NCBI GenBank assembly: GCA_019828565.1
Contig: JAHDYR010000002.1
Location: 1 to 64,000, forward strand
Source: Carpediemonas membranifera BICM
Taxonomy: Eukaryota; Protista; Fornicata
Length of the DNA: 64,000 nt
Direction of reading: 5' to 3'
The translations under genes and the position numbers were made by a program. Position 1 is the stretch's first letter. Each line of letters starts with the position of its first letter. Below are positions 18,048 through 64,000 of the stretch, in pieces. The notes beneath the pieces were generated by a model. It saw only the letters and a program-made list of their open reading frames with translations. It was not told the origin of the DNA and made no database searches.

Positions 18048-21000
18048 GTTGGTTCGCTCTTTCCACCATCCCATTGGCCTGAGGATGGTACGCGGTGGTG
18101 ATATGCTGCTGGAACCCCACCTCTTGCGATAGTCGTCGGAATAGGCCATTGTGAAACTCAGATCCGCCGTCTGACTGGAGTACTTGCGGCGCTCCATATC
18201 TTAGGACCCAGGTATTGATAAAGGCCTCGGCTGCTTCTTTTCCGGAGTTGCTCTTGGCAGGGACTAATTCAGTCCAGCGAGAGCACATATCTACCATGAC
18301 GGTAATATACGAGTACCCGTCACAGGACGGCAAAGGACCCATCGTGTCGATTGCCACGCGTTGTAGTGGGGTGTCAACAGCTGTGTGGAGACCGTCGGGT
18401 TGGTCGACCGGCGGCCGATCGAGGACTTGGCAGATCGGACAGTCGGATACGACCCTATCAACTGCATCGCGTGAGACTGACAGTCCTTGGCCACGGAGGC
18501 GCTCGATCGTAAGACGTCTCGACAGGTGGACGTCGGCGAACAAGTGAGCTTGGTGAATCTGTTCGGTCGTTGCTGTCTTCTTGGCCATGGCAAACACCCT
18601 AGACAAACCGTCAGCGGCACCGTTATCGAGACCGGGAACGTGGGAGATAGTGAAATCGAGATCGGCGATAGAATCGGCCCAGCGCCTGACCTTAGCGTTG
18701 ATCGACTTATACATATAGAGCAAGTTACGGTGGTCGGTCTTGATCTCGAAGCGCTCCCAGCACAAGAACTTGCGCCAGGCCTGGAGCGCGGACACAATGG
18801 CGTACGCCTCTTTTCACCAACACTCCACCGCGACTGTACATTATTAAATGCCTTCGATAGATAGCAGACGGGCTTGCCGTCTTGGAGGAGAACCGCTCCG
18901 TATCCCACGGCGGAAGCGTCAGTCATAACAACGTGTGGACGCGTGGCGTCGAAGATCGCGAGTGCATCCGCGGAGCAGAGGGCGGCTTTCGCGTCTTCTA
19001 GTGCTTTGGAGACGTCAGCGCTTGTAGAACTCGTCTTACCGGACATTGCATCCGTTATAGGCTTGACTCGCTCGGCGAAGAAAGGGATATGATCGCGGAA
19101 GTAGTTCAGGAACCCGTGAAGGGCCTGGAACCCTCTTGTGGACTTCGGGACTTTCAACTGTGCTATATCTTCAACACGCTGAGGCGAAATGCGAACCGTA
19201 CCATTGTGGATGATCCACCCCAAGAATTCAACTTCGGCACAGTCGAACTGGCACTTATCCCGACCCAGGTGGAGTCTCATCTTTTCGACTCGGGCCATCA
19301 CTCGCTCTAGGTTATCCAGATACTCTGCCTCAGAGTCTCCCATTACAATAATGTCATCAATATAGATAATGCAGGAAGCTCCGACCAGACCCTCGAACGC
19401 AGTCTCCATCGCGCGCTGGAAATAAGCCCCAGCGTTCCGCAGGCCAAACGGCATGCGAGTGTACTGATACTGTCCGAAGACAGTTCGGAAGGCCGTTAGG
19501 TGGCGACAACGCTCGGTTAGCGCGATTTGGTGGTAACCTGCTGCAAGGTCAAGAGTGGCGAAGATCCTCTTGCGACTCAATTGTGCCAAGATCTCGTCAA
19601 TGCGAGGAATCGGATAGTCAAACGGCTCGGTCAAGGAGTTAATTTCCCGGAAATTGACCACGAACCGCGTCTTCTCACCCTTCTTGGGGACAACGATCGT
19701 CGGGCTAGAATACTCAGACTGACAGGCCTCTATGAAGCCTTTTGCAAGCAAGGTGTCAACGTGCTCCTTAACGATGGGGACCTTAGGAGGAGGCACAAAG
19801 TATGGACGGACGTTCACGACCTTGTTTCCCTTGATCACCAGGTCGTAGGGGTCTAGTAGGCTAGGCGCATCACGCTCTTTGAAGTTGGAGGCGTATCGTC
19901 GAAGTATAGACGACTGTCGGTCGCGTGCCTCTTGGGACAGCTCGGACATGGCTTGTGCGATGTATTTCGTGGCCGGTGGGGTCTCACTAGAGTCCTCAGT
20001 CGGGTCGGAGGAGCTGGGAATGGCGCTTGGCAAGAGTCCGAGACTTACCATCTGAGGAAATCCGATGATGATGTCGAACGCAGTGTCTATCACGTAGGCG
20101 CGCGAATTTTGAATCCGAAACAGAATGAACACACCGACGCTGATTTACTCCCTTCTTGGTAGGGCAGTAATCGGCCAGGTGTCCTGACTTGTGGCACTTA
20201 GGGCAGAATGCCTTCGGCTCAGCGCACTTGAAAGACGGATGCCCGGGCTTACCGCAGTTGTAGCACACGTACTGCTTCTTGGGCTTGTTCTGACGGTTGG
20301 GCTTCACTATGGGCTTCGAACCTTGGCGTTCGTGGCGCTCCGAGGGATCTTGGTGGTCACTGCGTGGCTCGCGCTCGTGAACATGTGGAGCTCTGGGACG
20401 GGCAGCAGCGGGGGAGAAGGAGTTCACCATCTCTTGCGACTCCTGTTGGTCGCGTGACATTGCCATGACTTTCGGCATGATCGAGGGGATGTCGAGGCCT
20501 TCTGCGAGCTCCTTGACCTTGTACATGATCGTGTTGGATCCTTGCACGCGGAAGCATCTGCAGTACGTCTCTTTGAGCACATCCTCAGGTACATCTGGAT
20601 TGACTAACAGCTGGAGCGCCTTGAACTTCCGATTGACGTTATTGACCTCGACGGGGTCGAAGGTCTTGGCGCGTAGACGGAAAAGATCGAGCTGAGCGGT
20701 GGATCTGCTGGGACGCAGTACGCTGCCTAGGCGCTTGAGGATTCGTAGATCGCTGAAGTTGCGCTTTTGACGGCGGCGCTCGGTAGTTGCCATCAGTAAC
20801 GGTACGTAATCATCGTCTTCGGAGTTACCGGCCTCGTCGATGCATTGCGAGACATAGTCAGCGATAGATGGATCGACGAGTTCGGAGATATCGGCCTTAC
20901 CGCCGAGGGAACGGTACGTTTGGAGGTGAAGGTAAAAATCAAGCAACGCCTTCATTGAAGGGTCGCGGAATAGCGGGGGAACCGCTTTTTCTTTGTTCTT

Positions 21001-32645: not shown

Positions 32646-34257
32646 CATACTGTCAATTCCTTGACTTCAAGTCAAGTTTTTGTGACTTAAAGTCAAGGAC
32701 AAAACTTGACTTTAAGTCATTTTGCAAGAAAAAATGAACTCGACGATGAGCCGGAGCTGGATCTTCAAAGTGGTATGGTAGTACTTGGCTATACCTAAGC
32801 AATACGCATGCGCAGTATCAAACTTTTAATCCTGCTAGAAAAAAGTAACATAGGGACAAATTGGAATTGAGAGTTGAGACTCAAAAAACGGGCAGGGGGG
32901 AGGAAATGGTCCATAGGTACGCCGTATGGGTCGCTTCCTCCCTTCTGCCCCTTTTTTATCGCAAAATCGATTTGCCGGATTTGACACACGTTTGATGTGA
33001 TCAAAATGGATTTGATAGACATGGGTCCAGATCATGCAGTTGGCCATCCTGAAGCGCTAGGGCAGCCTGAAGACCGCAGCAATGCCTCTGCTGAATGCCC
33101 TTCATGCCTGACGGACAGGACGCGCGTTGACTCAAAAGGACTGCATGTTTCGGCATCAGAAGAAGGCTTGAAATACAACGGAGTCATCGCCGAACCGCTC
33201 CGACCAAGTCGGTTATTAGGACATCGCGTTCAAACGCCCTCTGCAATTACCAAGTCAATAGATGGGAGTCGACCTGATGAGCACGTCATTTTGGGCCCCA
33301 TGTGACCCTATAGCTGAGCTTGGCTGGGCGCTGCTGCGGCCATGGGCCGCTAGTGCCCTTACTGGCTCGTTTCTCCTCGTATAGCGGCCGTAGAGGTATG
33401 GTCTGAGCCTCGTTATAATAGTCTGCCCGAGTAGAGTCCAGCCATACCATAAATGCCCCCCATTCCCCCCCTCCCGGTCGCTCATACCTCCAAAATGGCC
33501 TATATTCCCTGTAGGAAGCTTAATAAGGGCCGATTTCCCATAAGTCGTGGCATAGAGGGAAGAGACTTTGTACACAGCCTCCAGATCGTGGGTTCAATTT
33601 TCACCGGGAGCAAATAGGTATTTTTGGCAGACAACGCCGCTCCGAGCTCTATCGCGCCCAGCGGTGCCTGCAGCGGCCAGAACAGAGCTAGAATTCGGGT
33701 GATTTTTAATCTCGATCGAAATGCTGCTGAAGCACGCTCTAGAGGGACTGAAGCGCTCCTCGAGGCGCCAATGAATGGAGATAGATCGTGTTGTTCGCGT
33801 TTACTTTGAATACTGCAGCAATAATGGAGATAATGAGATTTGCCGGGAACTGCAGACGAATTCCCTCACTAACTAGCCTGGAATCGTGATAAAGCTCCTA
33901 CATGATCACTCTGCATGCCCCAGAAGCATTGTACGCATGCTCAGAACCGCTTGAGCTGATGTTGGGCTGCTCCGCAGGATAAGGGATGATCGCTCATGGA
34001 CGTCTGAAAGCAGATCCTGGACGATAGAAGAGACGAAGAGAACACGTAAACATTTACATTCATTGCGACGCGTATGCCAGCTGGGTTGGCACTGGCGACA
34101 TCAACGCAGACTTCGCCATCGCTGTCGGTGGTAGGCGAGTCGTTGATGTTGTTAGGGAGTGATGTGGATGATGGAACTTGCTGTTGAGGGCGCCGGTGAT
34201 GCGGGGCTGGCGTGGCGCTGAGGGCGCTGGCGTAGGGGTGCTGTGTGGGCGCTGCGA

Positions 34258-34488
34258 TGAGGGCGCCAGGAATGAGGCGCCAGGGATGAGGGCGCCAGAG
34301 ATGAGGCGCCAGGGATGAGGCGCCAGGATGAGGGCGCCAGAGATGAGGCGCCAGAGATGAGGCGCCAGGACGAGGGCGCCAGGACGAGGGCGCCAGGATG
34401 AGGCGCCAGAGATGAGGCGCCAGGATGAGGGCGCCAGGATGAGGGCGCCAGAGATGAGGCGCCAGGATGAGGGCGCCAGAGATGAGGA
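34258..34488. repeat. Tandem repeat of a 13-15 bp unit GGCGCCAG(A)GATGA(G), about 16 copies
   Basis: Direct reading. Confidence 0.95.
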
Positions 34489-34499
34489 GTACAGTATTA

Positions 34500-34845
34500 G
34501 AACCCCGAAAACGCCATAATACCAACACCAATGAGCTTCATCAACGAAGATATGCTCACTGGTGCCGGTTATGGCGTTTTCGGGGTTCGTCGATCATTCT
34601 GCTCCCAAATCTGCACCTGAATTTTCGTGAGCATGCCCGGGAGCTATGCCTGACGAGTGATACCGCAGGGACCACGCTCAGATGCTCAGCCTCTGCCAGG
34701 CGGCACTCGTTTGAATTCTGCACGAAAAAAAATCAGACGACGAATGATGGGCAAAGGGCCGCGAAAACGCTGTAGTACCAGCGCAAGTAGAGTATTTTGC
34801 AATAAAATAGCTTACTTGCGGTGGTGCTGGCGTTTTCGGGGCCCC
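34500..34845. repeat. Two related inverted repeats
   Basis: Perfect 20-bp arms at 34500-34519/34569-34588, and an imperfect related pair at ~34756-34845. Both contain CGAAAACGC. Confidence 0.85.
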
Positions 34846-34850
34846 AATAT

Positions 34851-35075
34851 CCTCTCTCCCCCGTGCTCTCCCCCGTGCTCTCTCCCGGACGTTCCCCCGG
34901 GCTCTCTTCTCCCGTGCTCTCTCCCCCGTGCTCTCTCCCGGACGTTCCCCCGTGCTCTCCCCCGTGCTCTCTCCCGGACGTTCCCCCGGGCTCTCTTCTC
35001 CCGTGCTCTCTCCCCCGTGCTCTCTCCCGGACGTTCCCCCGGGCTCTCTCCCCCGTGCTCTCTCCCGGACGTTCC
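34851..35075. repeat. Pyrimidine-rich compound tandem repeat (CTCTCCCCCGTG / CTCTCTCCCGGACGTTCCCCC)
   Basis: Direct reading. Confidence 0.95.
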
Positions 35076-35106
35076 AGAAGAGACAATGGCTATTTCTGGA
35101 ATCCAA

Positions 35107-35362
35107 TGGACAGTTGGTGGCAGTATTGATGTTGTTTATGCAATTAAAGTTCCTATCGTTTCTTCTAGCTCGTTCCTTGTGTGGTTTCGTGGTTCCTTTG
35201 ACTCGTTTGATGTTGTTAATGAGTATCATGGGCCATAGCGGCCGTCAGACGCTATTGATGTGTTATTATGCAAGCTTATATCCTCAATAAAGCTCTATAG
35301 CTCATTGGCACTGAGAAAATAGTGGGAAGTCGGTTCCCACTATTGGTGCACTTTATGGCTCG
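35107..35362. repeat. ~256-bp direct repeat, second copy at 39837-40092
   Basis: Near-identical sequence. Confidence 0.9.
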
Positions 35363-35502
35363 ATCTCAATCCGCTGGTCTCCGACAGGCAAGAGAGCGAG
35401 ACAGGAATAAATGAATGTATATCTGACTGTCTGGTCAGCTGCGCCAAGTCGATGGCTTAGTCAGTGTTTGAGTCATTCCCACGACATATTTACTTCGTTC
35501 AT

Positions 35503-36890
35503 TTACTTCTGATGCTTTTCCTGCTCTCTCTTCTCCATCAGGTCGTCATACTCGGCCCTCGTCAGCCTCACAGTTGTCATCCCGGCATCACGGATGTGCT
35601 CAAAGGCCTCAACGGGCAGCTTCGGCATCCCGTCCTCGCTGTCGCTGCTGCTGCCCAAGTCTGACTCGCTCTCGTGATAGCGGCGAAGGCGAATGCGTCT
35701 GCTGGGCACCCTGGTCTTCATAGAGTCATAGAGCGGAGCGAGCCCACTTCCATTGGCCCCGCTACGGACACCCTCATCGGTATCTCTCTCAGACATGTCA
35801 CACTCAACCTGTTGTGACAGAACAAATGACAGGTTATCGACGAGGCTATCCTCGGCATCGCTGTCTGAACTCTCCTCATCCTCCCACTCTCCTTCCAGCA
35901 TCTCCAACCCGGCCTCATCGTCAAACTCGCCCTCCACTGCGGTCTCCGGCATCTCTGCCTCGCCAGCTGTCTCGTCAAACAGCGCCTCATCGTCAGACTC
36001 ACCCTCCCCCGTGTCGCCCCCCTCGGGCTTACGCTGATCGTGGAGCTGGACCATCCTAATCCTGAGCTTGTTGTAAAGCCAGTCATCGAGCGTCGGCGGC
36101 ACCAGGTCAGCAGAGCTTCGGATCTCCGGGTTGAGATCGAGGATCGTTGGGCGCCGCGTGGTCGTTAAGTGACTGGACGCCAACTGATGCCTGAACTGCT
36201 CATCGGTCAGGCTGATGCGCTTGTCCTTAATGACCTTACGAACCTTGATCGGATCCCTGGGCCTGCCAGTCCGTCTTTGTGTCTCAATCACCCGCTTCTT
36301 GAGCTGATTGAGATCGACATGCACAGTGGGCGCATAGCGAAGCTGGTTAACACTCAGCCCGACCGACTTGAGAGCCTGCGAGAAGGTGCTAGGCATCACA
36401 GCGGACATCGCAGATGGTGCCCCGGTGAATAGCAACCAGTCAGAGAGTTCCGGGGGAATCTGGAGCTCGCTCCATCAATATCGCGGGCTGATGTGGCAGT
36501 CATGCCCGTGTGGCTGATGATAAGAGCCAGCGCATTGTAGGGGAAGACTAGTCGGACAATAGCTTCCGATGCGACAGGCTCAAACTGCCCAAGCGGCTTG
36601 ACATTGTCTCTGCCGGAGTTTCGGAATGAGTTGACGGCACTGAGAGTGACAGCAGCGGTTGCCTTGTTCAGTGATGCAGCAAAACCGGGCACAAGCGATC
36701 TAACCTCCTCGGATCGGATCACGGAGAGCGCTTCATCCTCGGTACTCCCTCGCTCACGTTGTAAGAATTGAACGAACCGCGAAAGGTTGTTTGCAGCCGC
36801 TTTCCGGGAAGATTTCTTCTTAATCTTGTTCAACCAAGCTTCTTTCATAGCTTCCATGGTTGTTTCCATCTCCTGCGGGCTTCCTTCCAT
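35503..36890 (-). CDS. Degenerate tyrosine-recombinase-like N-region plus long acidic tail (frameshift near 36440)
   Basis: ORFs 36396..36890 and 35503..36435: SRKAAANNLSRFVQFL, ALIISHTGMTATSARDI, FSQALKSVGLSVNQLRY. Confidence 0.45.
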
Positions 36891-36891
36891 C

Positions 36892-37221
36892 GATATACGG
36901 ATTTCAGACTTTCGTCATGCACAAAAATTCGAATCTCTCCAAATGCCCAAAACAGTGGTCAAACCGTGTTCAGGGGTACAATAGAGTGCCATAGGCACGT
37001 TCTTGCATTCAAAATATTCTAGAGGTCGTTCATAAATTCTCAGATGGCCAACAGTACGAAAGTCTGAAATCCATTTATCATGAGACCCGACAAATTTGAA
37101 ATCCATTTATCGGGTGGATACATCACTGTAGAGGGTATTCATGGATATAGGTGCCTTTTTCGGTGCCGAGGGGAGTCAACATTTGAGGTCGTGCAGGCAG
37201 AAAGTCTGAAATCCGTATATC
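36892..37221. mobile_element. 330-bp MITE-like foldback
   Basis: Perfect 22-bp inverted termini GATATACGGATTTCAGACTTTC (possible TA TSD inside) and an internal partial copy at 37057. Confidence 0.6.
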
Positions 37222-38005
37222 TCATCACTGCTTATAGATCCTGGCAGACAACGGCCTCTTGGCAACGCCTGAGGTGTAAGGATTCGCTTGCCTCTGTGTT
37301 GTCGCATCAGCTTCGCTGAAAACGGGGGAACTGACCCGCGCATTCGCGCACTTTATGCTCGCAACGAGATTGAAATGGCGAACTTAAGAATAGAAAGAAT
37401 ACTGGCGGCTTTAACGTAGTAGGCATGTACACAACACTAAGAAACATCAGTTGGCGGGCGCAGAGCATCACTAAAGCAACAATAATCCCTAAACAACATC
37501 AATCATCATAAGTCCATCAGGACCATACGATATGAACAATAAATGAACCACAGAGCAGTATAGATGATTTGAGAGTACCAGGCATGGCCAGAATACCGCA
37601 ATTATCGTCCGTTGATCCACGTGACCTCCATCTTGGTCGGTATCCAGAGAACGCCCGTCAGACGCTTGCAACGGAACATTTAGGGGGTGCATCCTGAATG
37701 GGGCCAGATTTGAGGGACCCTTGGTCTGACATGCCATGACCGAGTACTCTAGGGGCCTCCACAGTGCGTCCCGAGGTACGTTATAGCACCACAGACTTGG
37801 TGTGTCTTAGCCTGCACCGCCCGAAAGCTCGCCGGATCACTCCCCATACGTTATATCGCCATTCAGTCCACATAATGGGTGTTTTCGGAGCGATTATATC
37901 CCCCGTTTGTATGGTATAACGTTTCCGACACCCCGTTGCCTACGGTTACTGGCAATTTTCTCATCTCTGTTATATGTCCATTATTGGGATATAACGAAGA
38001 GAAGA

Positions 38006-39764
38006 ATGACGTTCGAATTCCTTCACGAGTGGATCGAGAGCACCTCAGATGATGTGATTGAGGCCGTTATCACCGAATTCAAGGAGAAGAAGACAAACAA
38101 GGCGAAGAGTGCCGTTCTTCGGGACAAATTGCTCGACGAGAACGATATCTTCGATATAGTCGTCAAGAACGGTACGTAATTGGTGCAAATGTTTATATAG
38201 GGATCAACTTCAACCACCTGTGCTCATATTTCGAGATTCAGGGCGAGAAGAAGGCAGAACTCGAGGCATTGCTGTCTCAGCAGGTGCAGGATAAGACCTC
38301 GAACGAGATCATCGAGGCAACCTTCACGGAGAAGGAGATGAAGGCGTTTGAGTCGGCCGCTGTCACAGCCTTCAAGAACTCCAAGAGGGCTGAGTATGCC
38401 AAGGAGAATGAGGGCGCGCGTATCGAAAAAGAGGCGCTGAGTGTCAAGGTTCGGGCGTGGCGCAACGCGACATCCACCAACGCGCTTGTGCGCGACCATG
38501 TCACAGCAATGGTTGCCAGGGTGCGCAGCAAGGAGGCAGACCTTGCTTACATGAAGCACTCCTGCCGCTCGTACTTCGAAGAGTACATCATCGCCCTGGA
38601 ATGGTTGGAGACCCCCGCGGGAGAAGGTACGCCCCTGCTCCCCCCAGGTACTGGCGCTATCATCGATTACTATCACAAAATTGTTCGAGGATACAAGAAG
38701 AGAGTCAAGCAGTTGAGGAAGAGCTTGACGGCAAAGAGTGAGGAAGTCATCACGCTGCATCGACGCCTTCTGCAGCAGCAGGCTGAGCGAGAGGCAGCCT
38801 ATGACGCTGACAAGTCCATAGATGCATCACTCCCATGCAGCCCCATCCCGCCACAGTCTGGCACAGTCTCCAGGACTTCCTGTCCCCGACGCGATACGGA
38901 CGAGCCCGAGGCCTCCATGTCTGTGAAGCGCAAGGCCCTCATCATCACGCCCGAGAAGGCCAGGCCAGAGGACTCGGAGGAGGAGTCAGAGGAGGAGGAG
39001 ATAGAGGAGGAGGTGACTGTTGAGAAGAAGGGTGAGTCAGATGAGGAGGACGTGACCAAATGCGACGCCTGTATCCAGACTGAGCCCGAGAAGGCCAGAC
39101 CTGTGACCTGCGAGACTGGAACTGAGATGAACGAAGGTGACGACCGTACCCCGACAGATGACAAGGATGTCCAGACCGAGGAGAGAGAGGACTGCCTGGA
39201 CGAGTTCACACGTCACCTCCGGTCGAAGTTCAAGCCGTACAACCCCCAGGCGATGGTGACTGTGTTGGCCACTGCCTCAGGCATGTGTCGAACGAGCGTG
39301 ACGTACCGACAACAGATTGGCGTAAGCAGCTTCAAGCTGCTGCAGGGATTATGCAGAAGCGCGACCTACTTCCGGCAGACTATCAGCTCTTTTACAGCCA
39401 TGCCAGTTCAACAGGCAAGGGTGGCAAGAACGACAGTCTTCCATACTGCCGGGACACCGCAATTCAGGTCTGGTCACAGATTCACAACGTGCCCATTGCA
39501 TCCATCCAGGACGGCACAATCGTCTTCTTCCAGGGTAGAGACAAGGGTTACATCACCCTGACAAACACTAATGCGAGCATGTCCGTCATCCGTGTCATTG
39601 CAAACGTGATTGGCGTCAATGACTACATTTATATCTCCGGCACGCCAACTGACGTCACAGCACACGCGGAAGTGTACCATGCAACACCTGTTGAGCTGAG
39701 GAAGGCAGAATCGCACCTGTCTGCCCAACAGAACACAGAGGATGACTGTTATTTTGTGGAATGA
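38006..39764 (+). CDS. Hypothetical helical/acidic cargo protein with a 29-nt intron (38172-38200) and a frameshift near 39290
   Basis: Splicing GTACGT..TATAG joins MTFEFLHEW..VVKNG in frame to ORF 38269..39561. ORF 39285..39764 continues it. Confidence 0.6.
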
Positions 39765-41755
39765 GTCAGTAGTAAATGAATGAATTGCGGTGGCGTCGTG
39801 GTGCTGCCGTGGTGCTGTTGGCTTTGGGGCGCTGACTGGACAGCTGGTGGCAGTATTGATGTTGTTTATGCAATTAAAGTTCCTATCGTTTCTTCTAGCT
39901 CGTTCCTTGTGTGGTTTCGTGGTTCCTTTGACTCGTTTGATGTTGTTATTGAGTATCATGGGCCATAGCGGCCGTCAGACGCTATTGATGTGTTATTATG
40001 CAAGCTTATATCCTCAATAAAGCTCTATAGCTCATTGGCACTGAGAAAATAGTGGGAAGTCGGTTCCCACTATTGGTGCACTTTATGGCTCGCAACGAGA
40101 TTGAATGACGAACTCCGTCATCCGTGTCATTGCAAAAAGGTGATTAGCGTCAGTGACTACATTTATCTCCAACTCATCTACAAATGCAAATATCGAGTGT
40201 CTCCACCCCATCATCTCTGCAATCTCTGCAAAGACTGCCATGAGAACTACTCTGCAATTGCGGGAATCAAACTGAGTAAAACTGACTTGTGCTTGTGTTT
40301 TGGCGTGTCTTCGGTTGGGCTGTTGACTGACAGTGTTTATCGGCTGCTACAGGTTTCTCTCTATTTACAGATCTATTCACATCGAAAACTCGTTGTAATT
40401 TGCTATGTAGTATGAACAAAATGTCTTGATCCTTGCCGTGCAGCGCTTCATCTGCTCTAATTCACCATCAATGCGAGAATCAATGAAGTGCGCTCGTTGA
40501 ATCCCATAAACAACGTCTAGCTCCAATTCTATCCCTTCAATCGTTAATGCTATACGTTTCGCCGGCGATACCGGCGTCGCTCGTGTGTTTTCTTCATCGG
40601 GCGTCATCTGAAATGCGCAGTTTATGCGGAGCCTGGTTGGCTGTATAAAAGAGGTCCAGATGTGTATCTATCCCTGTATTGACTATCGTGCGTGGAAGAG
40701 CGGCGAGCTTCTGGAATCAACGGGGCGAATCTGCCCTGTGTATTCCGGCAGCGCACGGCCCTGCCACACACGTCCTAACTCGTCATTAAGGTCGTTAGTG
40801 ACCCTACAAACACTCATACGCGCATCATCCTACCTTTCATTAACGAGATTGGCTCTCGCGCCGCCCCAAATGGCCGTATGAACCAGGCGCTTGCCGGTCG
40901 CAACCTTTCGTCATCAATAGAACTCTATGCTCGCCACTTCACTGTTCCAGCAGGGTTATATTGCCAATGGGGACGTTTCAGATGTCTGAGCGAGCGATAA
41001 TGAGTAAAAGCCGACTTGATATTGATTAGTTGTGGGAAAAGAGGCTTATGCCATCTAGAATGAGCGAAAGCATGCTCAGATGGGCAAATATCTCGAATGC
41101 TGTCTTGCTATGAGCTCTATCACAGTCATTTCTGGATATCTCCGACATTGCTTCCGTCATTACCATTTTTTTTTCATGCAGGCGGCGTGACCTTAAACTG
41201 AACAATAACAATAACTCCCCCAATTGGAAGAGTTCACACCTGAAACCATTATGCCTGAGGTTTCAGCCAAGGGCGAGTACATTGCCGTCTTTTTAATTCC
41301 AATAACTTTAACTTTTTTCTTCGCGTTGACCGCCCAAGAATGTTCTCCTTACACGACGGTCTGGGCATCATCGTGTAGTAATACTTGTGTTTACTCGGCC
41401 TCTTGGTTTTTAGTTGCAGCGTAGAAAAATTCCCTGAGCTGTGCGCTCATCAATAACGCCTCTCGACTCGGCCCGAGTCTTTTGCTAAAAATCTCGAGAT
41501 CTGTTCTGTCCCCTTCGCAGATTTTTGTTGGATCACAAGCACTACTGGTGTAGATCAGATCCTGCAAAAAAACTGCGAAGGGGACAGAGCCAAAGTGGTC
41601 GAACTTGAAAAAAATGGCTCTCGTCGTCAAGAAGAAGTCACCCATACTCAGGTCACAGCTTAGCCCACAGTTAGCCATCAATGCAGTGAATAGAGAACTA
41701 GTACTGCTACCCAGCCATACCATTCTTATTTACTGACAGAGCCTGGTTCCTCTGA

Positions 41756-44491
41756 TTAATTCAAACGTCTTGACTTAAAGTCAAGTTTTGGCCTTGACTT
41801 TAAGTCACAAAAACTTGACTTGAAGTCAAGGAATTGACAGTATGCTCGGGTATAAGGCTCCCAAGTTGCCTCACTATCGTCGTAGCCGTGCCAGAGCACG
41901 TGGAATTGGAGGTTCCTCTGCCTCCAGCGGTGGGCGTCAACTCCTCGGACGACATACTCGTTGTGCAGGCGGGCGGCCCATCGTTGCAGCTCAGCATCTG
42001 TATATGACCCCTTAAACGTATAAAGAGAGTCTGCGTGCGCTGTGACGGTTGCAAGAGTTGTCAGGTCCCTGAGGGTGTAGACGTTAGGGTGGTCGCCAGG
42101 TGAGAGGACTCGCATAGGGCCTCGGATGATAGGGCCAACGGGCGTGTCTCGCCGGAGTAGAACCGCTGCGCCAACGATTGGTGCGTGCGTCTCCGAAGGG
42201 GGCTCACGTGACACTGCTGATCCTTGGTGGGCCTGAAGGGCGAGGAGGGATGAGCGGAAGTGCTCGAGGGAAATAGGGGAGTCATCGGTCGCGTTGTTGG
42301 TCGTGTGGAGCTGCTTGCCGAAGAGAGCAGCGTTGGCTGAAAGGCCGCTGTACTCATAGGGGATGTCGTTGAGCAGAATCACTGTGTTGGGGACTTCCTC
42401 AGGCCAGCTCCTGCCTGATTCAAGGGTAAAAGCCTTCAAATGGCGCTTGATCTCGGCGTTGCGTCTTTCAACTACACCACGGCCTGCCGGGTGATAAGCT
42501 GTACGGAGTTTATGCCTAATGCCATTCTCGGCCACGAATGACTTGAATGCCTGGGAAGAGAATCCGGATGCGTTGTCAGAGACGATAGCTTCGGGTATTC
42601 CATAGTGTTTGATCCAGTGTTCTAAAGAGTTGATGACCTCTGCTGTCGAGGTCGACTGTGTCGGGTACACTTGGGTGAGCTTAGAGAATGTGTCAACTAC
42701 GACTAGTGCGTGCCGGAGTGAGGGGTGACCATCTAGCGGACCAATGTGGTCCATTTGTACCACTTGGAAGGGGTATGCCCCAGCCAATGCATGCGGGTGC
42801 TGGCCGACGGGTTGAACGTTCAGACGGGTGAGCTGACAGACTGGGCACTCACTTACCCATTGTTGGACGTCTTTGTGGAGACCCGGCCAAGATTGTCCCG
42901 CATTCGCGATGCGTCGGCAGGTGGCGCGAACACCGAGGTGTCCTGCTGAACCGCCATGGTGTGCCTTGAACGTCTCGCGCTTGTTGAGCGATGCTTCTGC
43001 AGTGCTCACATGGACTAGGCGAGATAGCGTGTCAGCGACGGTGTTCTCTTGACCAGGGATATGGACGAGGTCGAAGTCGAACTCATTCATCGCCAGCGAA
43101 TGACTTTGGCGTTGGTGGATTTGTGGGCAAATAAGAACCAGTCTGCAGCACTCATCCGGATCTTGAAGTGCCACGAAAGTGCCACTATCCGACGATCCCA
43201 TCGCAAAGGCAATGGCCGAAAACGGGGCAGAGACAAACGTCGACATCATGGAAGTCACAGTTGTTTGGCCATTCGAGGCCAACACAACATAAGACGCGTT
43301 CATGGCGAAGCTACAGGCACCAGTAGGAATGGAGAGACTCTGGAAGGTGCATGTTTCCTTGCCTGCGAGATTGAACGCGGTCCTGAGGCATCTAGGTGGA
43401 TCGCCAGCATAAAGCAACCTAGAAACAGAGTGAATCACATTACACTTGTCTGACGAGAAGATGAGACGGTTAATCTCGACGTCAGATGGCATGAACTCTG
43501 TCAATGAGGCATTACTCCCAACTCCAAGCTGCCCATGAGTGTTATCACCAGCAATCCACTGCTTTGCTTTGATGCGAAAGACAACAAAACGATCAAATGC
43601 GTCAATTGCCGTCGGATTCAGCGAGTGAATGCAGCTGAAGCTAGCGTAATCACAGTGACTAGTCCTCCAAAACCATGTGCCCGAGACAAATATGCCTTCA
43701 CTACAGCTCAAGAGCACATACTTTCTCAGCAGCTGTAGACAGGTGATGTTGACGAACTTCCATGGCGGATAGTTACGGTAAACCTCACTGACAGAATGGA
43801 AGAACCTGACTCGATGGCAATGGTAATACGAGTCAATCCAGGTTAACCCTCCAGCTGTGATCCCGTAGCACCTCATCTCATCGTAGTAAAACTGAGGGAA
43901 GAAATGGCCGGCGACTCTAAGTTTGAGCGTGTCTCGCTTCGCGAAACAAACCCCCCGAAAGTACAAGAGAGTACCGCCGTAACAAGGGTGTTGTGCTGTC
44001 TCTCTCTTGGTGGTATGAAACTGGAGGAAGAACATCTTGCAGGCAAACCACCAGGGGCTCTCATCACCAACACCCGCCTCCATAAATATTGCCCAGACTG
44101 TCGCTTGAAGAAGCGTAAAAAGCGTGTGGGGCAAATGGGCATCTGCATCCGGGTAGTTGATCGTAAATGACGCATGCTCTGATCGGAGCATAATCTCTAT
44201 GCGTCCAAGCAGCTTGTGACCGCGATCGTCTGCGTGCGAGTCGTCCAGGAATTCTCGCATGAACCACCGAAGGTACTTGTGAAGTTCTGCTACGTCCTGG
44301 ATGAGAACCTGTTTGGGCGGCAGTGTCTCGGGCTCAGCACCAACCTGAGAGACGTATGCGAGCCGGAACATATTCGCGATGCCACCAGCGTAGTTCTCGC
44401 AAAGCGCATCAGCAGACCAATACATCAGGCAAAGCATCTGCTTTACCTCATTAGTCTTATGGACGTCCTGGAGCGTGAGATATGACGTCAT
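41756..44491 (-). CDS. Module 2 beta-propeller gene fused in frame to gypsy D integrase-chromodomain, cut by the TIR element at 41844
   Basis: 911-aa ORF: RCC1-type WIAGDNTHGQLGVG, junction near 43130, then HIPGQENTVADTLSR, integrase and chromodomain. Confidence 0.8.
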   Translation of the reverse strand: MTSYLTLQDVHKTNEVKQMLCLMYWSADALCENYAGGIANMFRLAYVSQVGAEPETLPPKQVLIQDVAELHKYLRWFMREFLDDSHADDRGHKLLGRIEIMLRSEHASFTINYPDADAHLPHTLFTLLQATVWAIFMEAGVGDESPWWFACKMFFLQFHTTKRETAQHPCYGGTLLYFRGVCFAKRDTLKLRVAGHFFPQFYYDEMRCYGITAGGLTWIDSYYHCHRVRFFHSVSEVYRNYPPWKFVNITCLQLLRKYVLLSCSEGIFVSGTWFWRTSHCDYASFSCIHSLNPTAIDAFDRFVVFRIKAKQWIAGDNTHGQLGVGSNASLTEFMPSDVEINRLIFSSDKCNVIHSVSRLLYAGDPPRCLRTAFNLAGKETCTFQSLSIPTGACSFAMNASYVVLASNGQTTVTSMMSTFVSAPFSAIAFAMGSSDSGTFVALQDPDECCRLVLICPQIHQRQSHSLAMNEFDFDLVHIPGQENTVADTLSRLVHVSTAEASLNKRETFKAHHGGSAGHLGVRATCRRIANAGQSWPGLHKDVQQWVSECPVCQLTRLNVQPVGQHPHALAGAYPFQVVQMDHIGPLDGHPSLRHALVVVDTFSKLTQVYPTQSTSTAEVINSLEHWIKHYGIPEAIVSDNASGFSSQAFKSFVAENGIRHKLRTAYHPAGRGVVERRNAEIKRHLKAFTLESGRSWPEEVPNTVILLNDIPYEYSGLSANAALFGKQLHTTNNATDDSPISLEHFRSSLLALQAHQGSAVSREPPSETHAPIVGAAVLLRRDTPVGPIIRGPMRVLSPGDHPNVYTLRDLTTLATVTAHADSLYTFKGSYTDAELQRWAARLHNEYVVRGVDAHRWRQRNLQFHVLWHGYDDSEATWEPYTRAYCQFLDFKSSFCDLKSRPKLDFKSRRLN

Positions 44492-44957
44492 TTGGAAGTG
44501 GGCTAAAAATGCAACAACACAGTCCCAAGAATTGTAATTTACTTTAGGCTTGCTGATTTACATGCTGAACAATATCACCGTCAAGTCACTGCGTTAAAAC
44601 CAATGAGCAGCTCGCATTACTCGCCAGCAGATGCTGTAGAAGCGCTATGCTCCGCACTTCACGCTTCGATCGCAACAGGAGCCTCCATTCCCGGGGATAT
44701 CCCCTCGTTGATCAGAACGGCCCTGTCGAGGCATGTGGATGCTCAAAACTGAACCTAACATGCATACTGAACTCATTCCAGTCGATATCGACGCGTATAG
44801 TGTATAAATGTGAACAGGCTAATCGGGGTTTGCAGATGGGTATCCTGTCATATAATAGTCTCTCTCTCTGCAGGAATGAGCGCCTTATCTGGGTGTCTCC
44901 GGTATCCAACTACTTGCCTCAGAACCTCAATCATTACCTTTATCTCCAATCCTACAA

Positions 44958-46063
44958 TCAAAACGTTTGCGGGGACTTATCCTGATGCTTCTGACACCTA
45001 ACACAAAGACGAATGGTGAACTGATCAGGACCAATACGGCGCACATAACTCACGAAATCCCTGTTACAAGCGGTGCAACCCCACTTCCTGCATGCATTGC
45101 ACATTAATACTCCCTTCTTCTTTGCTGCCTTGCAAACACCACAGGAATCGCCAGCAAACTTGCAGTAAATGCACTGCACGATCTTCTTCTTCTTTGTTGT
45201 TGTTATATCACCATGGAAGCAGTCAGGGTGGAAAAACTGCTTACATGTATTGCAAGTCACAAAACTATCCCTCGTGCTGGCGTTGTGAATCCAGTCCAAG
45301 CTCCGGCACGTGCTACACGTGACAGCAAGTATCTGGATGTAGATATCCCGGGGTGACTTATCCGCAAGTGGATCAACGAGGGCGGGAACAGTAGGCTGGC
45401 TACTTTCGCTGTCACCCGTACTCGTTGTGAGGGCTTTGGACACATTTCCGTTCAGCACAGACAATTTCCGCTCAAGCGACTCTATCTTGTCGTGCACCAC
45501 GTGGATGTCACCTTCTGCACGAACCGACTGGAATATCGGTCGCTCTCCAGGAGAAGTAACGACCCCCAAGTCATCAAGTGGCATCTGCTGATATGTGTTC
45601 AGCCTTTGTGTGCTGTTGTTCATTCTGAACTTGGTGGGCACTTCGCTGATCCTGATGTAGACATCAGAAGGGACAATATGTCCCAGCTGCATGGTCTTCA
45701 TGACATTCAGCAGCCCGGCCTGAAGCAAGGTGGTCTTCTGCGGTTGTCGTTTGACGAGCATATGCACGCATCCCTGGCGGTCGATGGCAAGCTTCCAGTG
45801 CGTCGTCACGTGTGTCCACTTGCCTAGGTGGTGTCCGACAAACGTTGACTAACTAGCTGGTTAAAGGCGTTGCAGACAACAGCTTTTGTCAAACCAGAAC
45901 GTCCTACGGACTCATCGATCTTGAAGCAGGCGTTAAGAACTGCTTCCATGAGAATTGCTCGAAACTTGGGCACCTTCTTATCAGGAAGGAAGGCTTTCAC
46001 CCGAGGAATGGATGGAACCTGCTCCTCTTCATCATGTGGAGCGTTGTTCTGTTCTTCCACCAT
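44958..46063 (-). CDS. Double PHD-type zinc-finger protein, module 2 (one frameshift near 45825)
   Basis: CSTC..CNTC..H..C..CIYC, then CGVC..CNAC..CTAC..CVRC. Likely start MVEEQNN at 46063. Confidence 0.8.
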
Positions 46064-46159
46064 TGTCGAGATTTTCCGATTGTCCCAAATTTTTCTATTT
46101 ACTTTTGGCTTGCAAGGATACATAATCCTACATAATTGCATTCGAAAGCGAAGCTAGTA

Positions 46160-48757
46160 ATGCTGTTGCCATCCGTCTATCTGACGACAACACATCAGGG
46201 CGATATTTTTGTGCCCAATGCAGTCAATGGCTTTGTTTCTGCCAATGTTCTACTTGCCAAGATCTATGTTTCTATTGATCCGTCCATAGTGAGCGCGTCA
46301 AGAACATTTGGCGACAAGACCAGACATAGAGAACGCTACTGCAGTATTCGAGACGATCTTCTCCGTGCTGAGATAATTCGTGCGGAAGAAATTAGCGAAC
46401 ATCTACGCGAGACCCCTCTCAACACCCGTGACTTCGTGCCAACAGTCAAAGCCCATCTCATTGGCAACCGTTGGCAGTTTTCTGCGGTACAGGAGAATCG
46501 GTTTCTAGCTTATATGCGCAGACGTCTTGAAGAATGTGAACGCCGAGAGAGAGCCACAACGGCCATGATGAGGATGCAAGATGCAATGCGAATGGTGACA
46601 GCTGGTCGGAATGAGATCCGTCGTGAACAGAGTATGCGAAGAGCAATTGCAAGGAGACATAATCTCAGTGTCGTCGATCTCGATACTGATAGCATAACAC
46701 TGAAGGAGCTTGTTTGTGACTTCCGGAAGATTGGTGGCGTGAATGAGCTCATGGATGAGGCACAGCAAGAACTTTTTCAGACCTTTGTTCCTACCAGCAC
46801 CACTACTGCCCACAGAACATGGAGAATCTCCGATGATTTGAAGAGGTATCCACTTGAGCAGACGGTGAACATCAAGGTTGATCCTTCGTCTGACGTTCTA
46901 GCACGAGTTATGGATGGTGTCAGGAATACGTCTTACGACAACAAGACACTCATTGTTTACTACGACTCTGTTGGGCATTGCCTCAATGACAAGCCTGTGT
47001 TGAAGCAATTGGGAATCACAGCGCGTTGTCAGAGTAGCTCTACTTATGAGTATGTCTCATGTGCTCAATTCGACTTGCACCGCTATGTCAAAGCGGTCAT
47101 TGCGAGTCCGCATCTGCTAGCATCGACAAAGGAGGAGAAGGAACACATAGAAAGACACCTTCGTGAACAAGATGCTGGCATTCATACTGACGAGGAACTT
47201 CACATGACAGTCTGGCTTGACGGATGGAGAGGATTGACCACGGCCGTGAAAGTGGGTCTTATTGATCGAAAGGGGTCTGTCTTTCCTCAGCGACACATTG
47301 CCCCATTTAGGATATTTGAGTATCAAGGTCCAGAATCGCAGATCTCCGAGTATATAACTGACATTGAGGAGATGATCGAGACTGTTATTCTGGGAAGATA
47401 CAATGTGAGGAACACAGGAATGACATGCCACTTCTCACAGATCATTCTGCTTGGTGATCATCCCGCGTTGTCGAAGCTCACTGGCTCCAAAAGTGGCGGA
47501 ACATATCCATCCCCATTCAGTAACGTTAAGTACTGCCTCGCTTGGCATCCTTATGGCTCCCACCCCCGTCGCACTATTGCTGATGTCATGAAGAACAAGA
47601 GAATTGTTGATAGTATCAGGCGAGGGATCCTGAATATTGACTCGAACGACTACGGCGACTTTGTAATTGATAACAGTGGAGCCTGGGGGCACACCTTTAT
47701 GTCTCCTTCTCGATTTTCTCTCGATGACATTTTTATCTGTCCGCCTGTCATGCATGTCAGCCACATGTTCATGGGTGAAGTGTTCCTCATGTGTCGGATG
47801 TTCAAGATGCATGAACTGACGGGTAATAAGGAGGAAAAGGAGGAAAAACGTGAGTGGAATGCCAAAATGCGGCAACTCGGCCGGAAAAAGTTACCCCAGA
47901 GAACAACTGGTTGCAACGAACAGGCTGAGGCAAGGAGATACATGGCCATGTTAGCTATTACTCATTTTGTCGCTTTCCCGCGTCCGGCGCAGTCATTGTT
48001 GAGATTGTGCGCGTACCTTCAAGCGCATTACTACTCTTTCGCGCCAGTGACTGATACAGTCTTGGAGTGGCACAGACTAACTTCGCTTGTTGTGCACATC
48101 TTTCATGTCACCATGGCTCTGAACCCGAGAGCATTGCAAACAGATGGTCATCTGCCCATGTTTCGTCCATGTGATGCAGGTGATCACCCTTGTGTGCGAG
48201 ATTTGTATGCCAACAGCCAGGTTGCTTCTTTACCTCGGATTCAGGAAGTTCTTCGCTTGCCATTTGGTTTCCTCTTAGAAGAGGACTTTGAGCGACAGTT
48301 CATTGCCAATCAGGAAGCAAGGGTTCATCTACGTCGCAACTCTGTGCTTAGTGCTGTAATTCTACGTCAACAAGCAGCAATGGTTAGCAAGTTCGTTGCC
48401 GGTGATTACAGTGGAACGCGTCGGGACCATGATGTGCCCAGTCTACTCCCAATTCGATCTATTACAGTACACAACTGTTGTACGAAAGGCAGGGAGTGGA
48501 TCAATATGCGAGTTAAGCTAACGAGAACAAAGTTTAAGAAGAAGGAGGACGGTGATGAAGATACATTCTCGGGTGAAGGCTGCTGGGGTGCAGAAGAGAT
48601 TGCGAAGTTAGATAAGCTATTTAATGGATGCGTCTGGGTTGGACGGTACAGAGGAAGACGACGTGGAAGAATAAACCTTTGGCTGCACCTCTTGATCGTT
48701 TATTATCCTCAGTGTTGCCCATGGTCCGTGTATGGCGCCTTGGAGGTGATGACATAA
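46160..48757 (+). CDS. RAG1/Transib-like DDE transposase, copy 2 (open; extreme C-terminus possibly replaced)
   Basis: VWLDGWRG (D at 47219), LLGDHPALSKLTGSKSGGTYPSPF (D at 47456), PPVMHVSH, KEEKREWNAKM, LYANSQVASLP, FGFLLEEDFERQF (E at 48290). Confidence 0.75.
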   Translation: MLLPSVYLTTTHQGDIFVPNAVNGFVSANVLLAKIYVSIDPSIVSASRTFGDKTRHRERYCSIRDDLLRAEIIRAEEISEHLRETPLNTRDFVPTVKAHLIGNRWQFSAVQENRFLAYMRRRLEECERRERATTAMMRMQDAMRMVTAGRNEIRREQSMRRAIARRHNLSVVDLDTDSITLKELVCDFRKIGGVNELMDEAQQELFQTFVPTSTTTAHRTWRISDDLKRYPLEQTVNIKVDPSSDVLARVMDGVRNTSYDNKTLIVYYDSVGHCLNDKPVLKQLGITARCQSSSTYEYVSCAQFDLHRYVKAVIASPHLLASTKEEKEHIERHLREQDAGIHTDEELHMTVWLDGWRGLTTAVKVGLIDRKGSVFPQRHIAPFRIFEYQGPESQISEYITDIEEMIETVILGRYNVRNTGMTCHFSQIILLGDHPALSKLTGSKSGGTYPSPFSNVKYCLAWHPYGSHPRRTIADVMKNKRIVDSIRRGILNIDSNDYGDFVIDNSGAWGHTFMSPSRFSLDDIFICPPVMHVSHMFMGEVFLMCRMFKMHELTGNKEEKEEKREWNAKMRQLGRKKLPQRTTGCNEQAEARRYMAMLAITHFVAFPRPAQSLLRLCAYLQAHYYSFAPVTDTVLEWHRLTSLVVHIFHVTMALNPRALQTDGHLPMFRPCDAGDHPCVRDLYANSQVASLPRIQEVLRLPFGFLLEEDFERQFIANQEARVHLRRNSVLSAVILRQQAAMVSKFVAGDYSGTRRDHDVPSLLPIRSITVHNCCTKGREWINMRVKLTRTKFKKKEDGDEDTFSGEGCWGAEEIAKLDKLFNGCVWVGRYRGRRRGRINLWLHLLIVYYPQCCPWSVYGALEVMT

Positions 48758-48769
48758 ACTGCACGTTTA

Positions 48770-49723
48770 CTAATACCCCACTTTAAGGAACAATGCGGGC
48801 AAGTTGACAAGTTCTGACACGCTATCGAAGGCTTCGGTGATGTATGGCAGGGCATCTTCGTTCCTGCCACGGTTTTTGATCACTTCTCTCTTCACACAGG
48901 CAAACACTGTCTCAATGGGGTTCAAAAAAGGAGCATAGCCAGGTAGAAAGAAGAAGGTTACTCCGTACTCCTTGCTCAGTGGCTCATACAGCTCAGCGCG
49001 TCCCGTCTTATGACTCCGTGCGTTATCGAGCACCATGACCTTGTGCTGACCGCGGATACGCTCTAAGAAGCGACGTAGAACAGTAAAGAAGTCGTCCGCG
49101 TTGTACGTTCCCTCGGTGATAGCCCGGTCTATGATCCCATTTACGCCGAGGAGGGCGTATACTGAAACGCGCTTGCCCACAACTTTCCCGCTGGCCCTGC
49201 TCACCGAGTCGCCCGCGGCCATCCACCCCTTGGTTCGTGCCTGATGGGGGTCGAAGGAGGTCTCGTCTAAGAAGACAAGATCTTTGAACGCGTGCTGAGG
49301 GCGGATTACCGTGGCGTACTCGGCCCAGAACTCACTGATACGTGTGGGGTCGCTCTCATACCACATCTTGAGGCACAGCTTGTAGTTGTAGCGGTGCTTT
49401 TTGAGCCAGCGGCGGAGGTGAGATACGGAGGGAGGGTCTTCTACCCAGCCTGCTAGGATGCCTCGAAGATCAGCAGCAGTGAACTGTCTGTCTTCATCCT
49501 CGCACCTAGCAACAGCTCGGATTATCAACTTGTCGTGCTTCATAGTCGATTTGTGTTCCCGCTTCCGCTTCTTGATCGTTCCTTGGTGCGTATAGTACAA
49601 CCGTTTCCAACGTGTGACTGTTGACCGGCTTATCATGCCGAGTTGCTTCATTATATCTTTCTCGGAGGCCCCTTGGTCCATCATAAGACCAAAACGTATT
49701 CGCGTCTCAATCCCATAGGCCAT
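48770..49723 (-). mobile_element. IS630/Tc1-like transposase (DD37E), intact ORF; element ends not identified
   Basis: MAYGIETR start, HTH region ISRSTVTRW, VFLDETSF, VLDNARSH, PGYAPFLNPIE. Confidence 0.9.
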
Positions 49724-50789
49724 GAGAATCAATACAATTATGACGCATGAAGTCGAGAATGAATGCGTCATTTATTCTGGCTTCGACAATAGTAGTGATC
49801 TTTGCCATTGCTGAGTTATATTCAGTCACCTATCCATTCTGTTCAGAGCTGAATGGAAAATTGTGAGACTTGAAGTCGCATTGAACAACTCCGTGGTCAT
49901 GTATAAAAAATTTAGCCTGTATTAGATGACTAATATAACTGAGTTGGACACCAGGGTCGACCTAACAGAAGTTGGAGACGACAGTGCGGTCGACAGGAGG
50001 AGTATCCAGGCTGAGACATGGTCGACAACGACTACATCGGTGACAGGGAGGACATGTGGATAGTATTTGAGCACGTGAGTAAGCGTGAAGTTCTGATCAG
50101 GATGATGCGAGGGTGGGTCATAAACATTGATGAGATCCTACCACTTTCGAGGCCCAAAGTCGCTCAAGTATTGCTTACTGTTACCTGCAGAGTAGCCCTG
50201 TATTGTTCAGTGCCTTTCAATCAAGCTCAAACACCATGCACAGGTAGCTGTGCGAAATTCGGTCTTAAAGTGCATTTTGCGACAGCTACCTGTGCGTCGC
50301 TACGAGGGAAGCAGCAGCGGAAATAAAGACAGGAATACCTTATAAATAGCATTTATCGACAACATCAGTGATTCTCTTGGCGAACAGTGGTCTCAGTGCA
50401 GAGAAGCATTTCGTGAAAATGTGTGAAAAATGCAGAAGCTCACAGATGCATGGAAAGCATGTAGTGATGTCCTGTACATCCAGGAGTGTTCAGTGCCATC
50501 TCTTTCGTGTTCTTGCGCCTTGTGAAAATGTGAAAAAGATTGCACTGAATCTAATGTTTTCACCATTTTTTCCCTGGGGCTTTTTTTCGTGAAAAAGGAC
50601 TTCCTCATGATTTCCTCAGGCATCGAAACCCCGTTTTTAACAGTACGTCTTCACCGTTTTGCCAGGCCCTCTTTCTGGTTGGCGGCCGGGTACTACCGGG
50701 ATACGTGGGGTTGCCCCCATTGATCCCAGGAGTGCCCCGCCCCCTCCCAGTCTCCGGTTCCTGGTCTCTGTTCCGCCTCTGTGCTGTTG

Positions 50790-61192: not shown

Positions 61193-63918
61193 TTACGTCG
61201 AGCTTGGGTCCCCACCAAGCCTCTCAAAAACGTCCTCAAGGCTCGAGTCGCTGATTTCCCAATCCCGCACACCACCACCACTAGATACGACTGACTCCAG
61301 TGCCTGATAGATGGATGACAGCGCCGTGGTCGTCGGGACCCTGAAGGTGAGGATGCCCACAGATCTGAACAGAAGTGCGGCTCCTGGGAGGGCTTGGATG
61401 ACACTGTCTATGGCCCTATCCTCCTGGGCGATGCCGCAGGTTACGCGGACAGAGTATCCAGTCTCAATCTTGGCCTTCAGCTGCGATGGAGTTCCGAGAG
61501 CGACAAGCTGGCCGTGTGCGAGGAAGGCGATGCGGTCGGCGAGGTAGTCGGCCTCAGCCATGGAGTGGGTCGTGATGAGCATCGACCGCTTCTGCTTCAT
61601 GGCGAGCAGGGTCTCCTGAAGCTCCATGGAGGTCGCAATGTCGAGGCCGCTCGTCGGTTCGTCCAGGAGGCAGAGGGCGGGCTCGCCGACAAGGGCCATG
61701 CCGATACCGAGGCGCCGCTGCATGCCACCGGAGAGTGCCTTCGCCGTCTTCTTGCGGTGGGGTAGCAGGTCAAGCTCGGTCAAGATGCTCTTCACCGTCT
61801 TCCTTAGCGTGATCGGGTTGACAACGCCTCTGATGCGAGCAAACAGAGCCAGGTTCTGGGACACCGTGAGGGTCGGGTAGTGGATGTTGCCCTGGGGGCA
61901 CATGCCAACCTCGCCCTCGCAGTGAATCGATACGGAGCCGCCAGACTTGGTCGAGATGCCGGAAAGAATGTTAATGAGTGTCGATTTTCCTATGTAAATG
62001 GAACTGATGATAACGTACCTGCACCGTTGACGCCGAGGAGTACGAGGGCCTCATGGTGCCTGATTTCGAAGCTCACGTGGTCTAGAGCATTCACGGTCAT
62101 GCCGTTTGATGTCCGGAAGATCTTTGTGAGATCATCAATACTGCACAGCGAGTCGCTGCCGGGCGTGCGGATGATGAGGTCGGATGGAGCGGTCTGGGGG
62201 ATCGGCTGCTCGCCGTCAATGAGGGCCTCGATGTCGTCATCGGCCTGCCGTCTTCTGAGGCTGGTGATGGCACCGACGAGAACGCCGATAGAGCCCTTGA
62301 GGACCTTGCTGATCGTGAAGGACACCAATCTGATGGCGTCCTGGAGGTGTGACTCGAGCAACACGATCAGGGCGAAGAGGGTGAAGTTGACGACTGTATG
62401 AACGGCAATGAGACCCAGGTCCAGCCAAGGCTCGCTGAATTGCCACGTGGGGAATGCAAACGCATCTCTCATGCTCATACGCCAGGCGATTGCATGGATG
62501 AACCGAGCAATGGTGAGGGGCATGAAGAGGTGCAGCACGACGGGCATCTGGAAGCTGTCAGGGTAAAGGAAGCCGTTGAGAATGAGGATAAGCGGGAACG
62601 CAAAGGCAAGGACGGTGAAGCAGACAGGGTGGACGAACCTGGGGGCCCTTATGATCTGGGAGAGCAGCAGTGTGAAGGAGAAGACGGCTGGGGCCAGAAG
62701 TAAGAAGAATGGGATGAACAGCGGATGCAGGATGCTGAACGTGCAGTATGTCATGACAATGACGGTTATTACCCACAGTGCAATGTACTCTAGCATGAAA
62801 GTGACCGACCGCGACACTGAGTAGACTGTGCGACGGAGTCCGGACTGTCGTAGGAGGGAGACGACGCCGAGCACGCGCTCCTTGACAATGTCTGAGAGCA
62901 CCAGGGGTACAAGCATGAGGAACACGGGCGTGAGGGCTGCTGCCGCGACCTCGCCAACGAAGATGGCGTTCGTCTGGCCATTGACGGTGACGTCCATGTT
63001 GAGGGCCTCGTCAAGGCCATAGGACGCGAACGTAGTGTCATTAAGAAGCCAGTACGGGTAGATCTCGTCCGGCCAGCATGACTCCCGGTCGGATGAGAAG
63101 ACACTACTCGGGATGCTCATGGCATATAGGTGGTTGAGCTGAATCAATGGGACACGGAATGAACTGCCCATGCCGACTGTAGCCATGAACTGGGGCACTG
63201 ATGGAACGTACATGTCAAGCTTCATGCTGGCGATGGCGTCTCCATCAGTGGTGGCCTTGAACTCCTTGATGTCCCAGCCACCGTTCTTGGGCACAGTTGG
63301 GGCGTCGTCGGAGAGATACTGGCCCTCGGTCTCATATTGAAACCAATAGCCCCACCTTCTCATCTCAGACTCGAACTTGCTGTGGTCGGTAGTGACGTTG
63401 AAGGAAGGGACGTTAAGAACCGGGTCGGACAGATACTGTGCAACGCGGAGCTTTCCAAGGAGGCCCGATCGTCCTGCTGTGTCGCCAGTGACTGGGGCAC
63501 TGCCGAGGAGGGCGGCGACCGACTCTGAGGCATGCACTGGAAGGTTGTACGGCCACATCGACGGAGCGTTCATGGCGTCATCAGCGAACTCCACCCACTC
63601 GAAGTATGTGTTATCCATGCCTGTGCGAGTGTCAGTCAGGAGGTCTGGATCGTGCTCGAAGGCCTTAAGGATGGGGCTGCCGATCGACACGGGCGCGAAC
63701 AGAAAGCTGATGCCACGGAACTCCTTTGCAATGAAAACAACGAGGAATGCGATTGCTGGCATCAGGACTAGGTAGCAGATGACGGAGATCTTGCTATGCC
63801 ACATGAGGAGCAGGTCCTTGATGATCAGCGCGATAACCTGGCTGCAATACACGTGAATCTCATGTAATATGCGTTGTAGACCGCTTGGACGAACGGTCTT
63901 TTGCTCTGTGGCGTCCAT
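61193..63918 (-). CDS. ABCA-family half transporter with a 29-nt intron (61990-62018)
   Basis: TMD with a large extracellular loop. Splicing restores Walker A GVNGAGKST. Signature LSGGMQRRL, Walker B LLDEPTSGLD, TTHSM and C-terminal SLEDVF. Confidence 0.92.
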
Positions 63919-64000
63919 CTGGGTTGCAGGCCTCGCCAATCTCACGACCTCAACTTCGAGATCCAGTCGAGGTGTGATCACTCTCTAGAGAAGGGTGGTG

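Follow-up and report, generated by a model that had tools for sequence, protein, structure and literature searches.

Positions 43130-48757 of the window (the whole 64,000-nucleotide stretch of the Carpediemonas membranifera contig that was analysed) raise the question of whether three neighbouring genes, for an RCC1-like propeller, a PHD-finger protein and a transposase, form a functional unit that was copied and rearranged from a related set, here called module 1. An earlier note, made from the sequence alone, had read the locus as a second, reshuffled copy of that module. Its description of the layout is accurate: the propeller gene (minus strand, ATG at 44491) is followed by the PHD gene (minus strand, ATG at 46063) and the transposase gene (plus strand, ATG at 46160), the latter two lying head-to-head with an ATG-to-ATG gap of exactly 96 bp, and module 1 does read PHD(+), propeller(-), transposase(+). 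Pairwise alignments also bore out protein-level similarity between the modules for all three genes, at 32% over 178 amino acids for the transposase (E 2e-29), 29% over 99 amino acids for the PHD protein (E 5e-14) and 25% over 171 amino acids, in the N-terminal half only, for the propeller (E 4e-11); at the DNA level, where the note had seen no obvious similarity, it is limited to one 64-bp patch at 77%. The locus nevertheless represents a family of its own, single-copy at the DNA level, rather than a duplicate of module 1; the interval 44204-48624 has no further DNA copy in the C. membranifera genome, the families A (that of module 1), B and C are multi-copy with 97-100% protein identity, and the module-2 transposase is about 33% identical to the intact family-A copies. 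The proposed reshuffling has to be turned around as well: since the head-to-head arrangement of PHD and transposase genes is the commonest order among the nearest families (B, C, D and the locus L036), module 1, the exception among these, is the rearranged one. It is likely that 43130-48757 holds what is left, on the left side, of a transposon that is dead and single-copy and belongs to a Carpediemonas lineage of the CMCT clade, with the PHD protein as its second element protein, lying beside a truncated RCC1-like gene of a host family.

The transposase gene (46160-48624, plus strand) retains codons 1-821 of a DDE transposase with a predicted RAG1-like fold, as indicated by AlphaFold, Foldseek, VIA and alignment. 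The AlphaFold model (pLDDT 76) found RAG1 as its best Foldseek match (E 7e-9) and yielded VIA Z scores of 14.2 for RAG1, 13.7 for BbRAGL, 13.1 for the P element and 11.1 for Transib; in the Atlas comparison, the RAG1 and EnSpm Transposase_21 clusters were level at 0.92. Residues D354, D433 and E711 are invariant in the transposase alignment and, judged by motif, would constitute the putative catalytic triad. The C(2)C motif of the CMCT clade is replaced by YPSP or YPCP in this lineage, with one cysteine retained in some relatives, and the H(3-4)H motif before E711 is absent, only MHxSH being retained; the alignment had no match among Pfam and PDB sequences. At least 66 transposase loci, mapped mostly by coordinates like the other loci of this genome, occur in C. 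membranifera in at least eight families of 28-60% identity. A search of 1.84 billion proteins returned only 18 matches outside the genome, and those that were traced came from a second assembly (GCA_002919055.1) and one metagenome; a metagenome scan gave no confirmed candidates. The transposase tree has support only for the C. membranifera clade and for the grouping of families B and C.

The transposase frame is open, as the earlier note stated, but the gene is not intact, as its codons from 822 on are foreign. An unrelated IS630/Tc1-like piece (48625-49791, minus strand), identified by a DDE_3 open reading frame at 48770-49771 (Pfam E 1e-26), supplies the last 44 codons (48625-48757) and the stop; this repeat is present at six other places, and its 99% copies begin exactly at 48625. 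Because the codons from 822 on belong to the repeat, the C-terminal CxC segment of related transposases is missing here; the relatives extend another 26-45 residues and end in CxC, a figure that depends on the end alignment. The IS630/Tc1-like piece itself shows no recognisable pair of terminal inverted repeats (TIRs) or TA duplication at this site and is probably left-truncated; 7 bp of it fall within the next repeat.

The PHD-finger gene (44958-46063, minus strand), recognised by Pfam and alignment, is frameshifted near 45835-45845, and its first frame stops at 45824-45826. The Pfam PHD match (E 9e-5) falls just under the cut-off, and both halves of the broken gene align to intact PHD proteins of 410-438 amino acids in families B, C and D, relative to which about 25-30 codons are missing at the break; in the alignments, an X marks the break of frameshifted PHD genes. 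An intron was considered as the cause of the split and rejected: since homology crosses the would-be donor site and these codons are gone, a deletion fits better. The break may also stem from an assembly error. An eight-taxon PHD tree was almost unresolved, with long branches. Between the divergent start codons, the AT-rich spacer of 96 bp (46064-46159) is, from its sequence and position, a candidate bidirectional promoter.

The propeller gene is preserved in its 5' part (43135-44491, minus strand), and its sequence identifies it as RCC1-like, not kelch-like or RAG2-like, and as a member of a large family dispersed in Fornicata. It matches a Fornicata RCC1 cluster in the Atlas at 0.96, with 209 shared features, and contains the RCC1-repeat motif GDNTHGQLG; the Pfam RCC1 match is weak (E 0.13), and the structure model (pLDDT 31) was not used. 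Dispersal within the genome is extensive, with 119 listed loci, a lower bound, beyond family A and the module-2 locus, and at least 50 dispersed host genes outscore the module-2 propeller when compared to the module-1 propeller. At about 43134 the gene is truncated and continues in frame into a gypsy integrase-chromodomain piece (41845-43134, minus strand; Pfam rve, Integrase_H2C2 and Chromo). This fusion of an RCC1-like 5' part with gypsy sequence occurs twice in the window, at 41756-44491 and 16263-18197 with 99.8% identity, the duplicated chimera occupying 15687-18047; it is probably a chance junction that was copied by segmental duplication. Ahead of the RCC1 repeats, at residues of about 120-155, the module-2 propeller carries an LP...CK/CR motif that is common to the propellers of the window and also present in L031; by eye only, it appears F-box-like.

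All three genes of the locus are thus damaged, the transposase by its cut at 48624, the PHD gene by its frameshift and the propeller by its cut at about 43134, and the module-2 copy is most likely dead. Across the 64-kb window, pieces of gypsy, Tc1-like and DNA transposons are nested together, with few host genes among them; an ABCA-like transporter gene at 61193-63981 is apparently the first ordinary host gene beyond this nest. Near the opposite end, a broken kinase-like sequence (186-876) has 82% similarity to the cargo gene of family B. An open reading frame at 11215-11841, SET-like by eye and lacking a Pfam match, belongs to a repeat that precedes family-C transposases at a distance of 13-23 kb and that module 1 abuts at 11038.

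The extent of the element can be approached through its relatives. Sequence sharing among copies of several families ends at CAGTATG or CATACTG, and sister elements in two assemblies have the termini CATACTG...CAGTATG. The window also contains, at 32646-41844, another member of the superfamily that is complete and 9.2 kb long; it shares sequence with family D, and its TIRs begin with CATACTG. Its empty twin site at 15687 is preserved in a duplicated segment, and the filled site is longer by the element and an extra CT, a target site duplication (TSD) of 2 bp. The 11.6-kb element L032 in the second assembly has long TIRs and a 2-bp GC duplication, and sister families have been mobile recently. 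Most verified ends consist of the heptamer, a spacer of 9-11 bp and a palindrome whose centre lies near position 23 or, for families E and F, near 28, the palindrome sequence differing between families; the ends at window positions 11038, 14877 and 41844 and in L027-L030 and L032 mostly follow this heptamer-spacer-palindrome layout, which loosely resembles a recombination signal sequence (RSS). The 9.2-kb element also holds two GC-rich tandem arrays, at 34258-34521 and 34857-35087, with 14-bp and 12-bp units.

By likeness to these verified ends, a probable left terminus of the module-2 element is found at 44763-44792 (plus strand), where CATACTG is followed by an 11-bp spacer and a perfect 12-bp palindrome at 44781-44792; heptamer, orientation and palindrome placement (+19) all match verified ends of other families. 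Background rates at this site are about 2% for a heptamer in the gap and 1.3% for the palindrome, in a test that was chosen after the site had been seen. The end occurs once in the genome, and neither a partner TIR nor a TSD survives. The site would probably mark the left end of the element between the propeller and PHD genes, which places the propeller outside the element and implies the layout end-PHD-transposase, as in family D. Just outside the proposed end, at 44693-44704, there is a second perfect palindrome of 12 bp, built around GATATC. Position 50647 was considered as the right end and rejected, as neither TIR nor TSD matches 44763; it closes a terminal segment (49785-50647) that ends in CAGTACG and, by sequence comparison, belongs to another family of the same superfamily, with 92-95% identity to seven loci and 79% to the ends of family G.

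The inference in the earlier note that the gene set is functionally coupled holds for the transposase and the PHD protein, and finds no support for the propeller. Of 58 PHD loci, 36 have a listed transposase no more than 12 kb away, compared to about 7% expected by chance; PHD genes are also present in L032, L036 and L037, and the transposase/PHD pair recurs in the second assembly and in a metagenome, so that PHD is a constant partner. None of the 119 listed propeller loci, family A and the module-2 locus excepted, has a listed transposase at a distance of 20 kb or less; the genome match lists are lower bounds, and divergent propellers within other families may be missed. Linkage of propeller and transposase was seen only in family A, the module-2 locus and L037. 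The complete element L032 contains a PHD gene and no propeller, and family D ends about 1.4 kb beyond its PHD gene, with no propeller match in that interval. L037 (PPCM01001064.1, second assembly) is bounded by TIRs and carries an RCC1-like gene behind its PHD gene, so propeller capture recurs; the relative order of the two genes matches that of the module-2 locus. The 14.6-kb L037 contig carries, between inverted terminal repeats, PHD, RCC1-like, kinase, OTU-like, SET-like and caspase-like genes and the transposase; among the cargo of the relatives, kinase and GNAT are identified by Pfam, and SET-, OTU- and caspase-like genes by motif only, without Pfam confirmation. Cargo is also exchanged: L039/L040 and L031 are 99.7% identical in transposase and right end and only 70% in the upstream gene, and recombination swaps the cargo arm between them. 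A three-gene module of transposase, PHD and propeller is not supported; repeated capture from the very large host RCC1-like family is the best account of the propeller linkage, and the module-2 propeller is probably flanking DNA rather than element cargo.

A less probable reading, which nonetheless deserves some weight, places the propeller inside the element as useful optional cargo that was captured repeatedly; it might serve as an adaptor that binds chromatin or proteins, for instance, and the true left end would have been lost beyond 43134. Family A has a propeller beside the transposase at at least seven loci, L037 encloses its RCC1 gene within TIRs, the N-terminal region of the module-2 propeller finds its best match in module 1 (37 vs. 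30 bits), and the window is rich in nested transposons and poor in host genes. However, a terminus-like site separates propeller from PHD, the propeller is missing near all other listed transposases, and the three propellers are not mutually close, the L037 gene being barely similar to those of the window (E 0.006 and 0.06).

RAG2 combines a propeller with a PHD finger, and the locus could accordingly be viewed as a three-part machine of transposase, propeller cofactor and separate PHD protein, equivalent to RAG2 split into two genes. RAG1 is indeed the top structural match, and the termini may be bipartite in the manner of RSSs and the TIRs of RAG-like (RAGL) elements (PMC9435367); yet the tie of RAG1 with EnSpm Transposase_21 in the Atlas and the Z score of 13.1 for the P element against 14.2 for RAG1 weaken the structural argument, the propeller is RCC1-like and not kelch-like, the TSD measures 2 bp and not 5, and families that moved recently have no propeller linked to them. 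Complete propeller-free elements largely refute this arrangement, which is very improbable. Domestication of the single-copy transposase as a host gene, its frame held open by selection, is hardly credible: 821 open codons with three acidic residues persist without DNA-level siblings, but the C-terminus was replaced by a recent repeat, the partner gene is frameshifted, and the locus sits in a nest of recent insertions.

The probable CMCT-clade element can be set beside known transposons. [quoted passage not shown] The lineage shares with it the CA..TG termini, a TSD within this range, the RAG1-like DDE fold and the Atlas tie with Transposase_21; it differs in the change of C(2)C to YPSP, the absence of H(3-4)H, the lack of a Pfam match and the constant PHD partner gene. 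The combination of CA..TG ends with a 2-bp TSD fits CMCT and not RAG/Transib; with C(2)C altered and H(3-4)H missing, it is a derived lineage of CMCT-like behaviour and is set in no named superfamily. With RAG1/RAGL elements (ProtoRAG, AanRAGL) and Transib it has in common the best solved-structure match, termini that begin with a CA..TG heptamer and may be bipartite, and a second gene inside the element; unlike these, it makes a 2-bp TSD instead of the 5-bp TSD of AanRAGL (PMC9435367), lacks a kelch-type RAG2L, has altered zinc-ligand motifs and reaches only 10-14% identity. It is not a RAG transposon. Chromatin proteins are also encoded by the SET-carrying Harbinger elements (HarbingerS) and the VANDAL anti-silencing transposons, which share this feature and differ in transposase superfamily. 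TET/JBP-carrying transposons of fungi, including PlavakaB (termini CATCA, TSD 2-3 bp) and EnSpm, are likewise CMCT elements with epigenetic-enzyme cargo (PMC12730594), whereas the cargo of the present lineage consists of PHD with SET-, OTU-, GNAT- and kinase-like proteins, and there is no Pfam match to Plavaka.

In an intact element of this kind, the DDE transposase would bind the terminal heptamer and palindrome, excise the element and reinsert it with a 2-nt stagger, by cut-and-paste. The PHD protein, produced as a second element protein from the putative shared divergent promoter, may read histone tails and thereby guide insertion or prevent the element from becoming part of silenced chromatin; the SET-, OTU-, GNAT- and kinase-like proteins encoded by larger relatives would act alongside it. 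The propeller would not be required; because its family is so large, it would sometimes be captured (module 1, L037) or, as at the module-2 locus, be merely adjacent.

A literature search of incomplete coverage found no paper describing this RAG1-fold/PHD transposon lineage. A bolder interpretation, doubtful on present evidence, is that of an undescribed RAG1-fold lineage that lost its zinc motifs, depends on a separate chromatin-reading PHD protein and has repeatedly recruited RCC1-like propellers as cofactors; if true, it would be a convergent protist route to the logic of RAG1, propeller and PHD in the V(D)J recombinase. The module-2 copy itself matters less, being broken and lowering the support for a propeller partner; better objects of study are families A, B and C, whose copies are intact. 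What carries wider significance is that the pairing of a RAG1-fold transposase with a PHD protein was kept over deep divergence, at about 30% identity and in two assemblies and one metagenome. The lineage provides a testable case of a transposon that brings along a chromatin reader, and it can be compared with the way in which the PHD of RAG2 came to steer RAG1.
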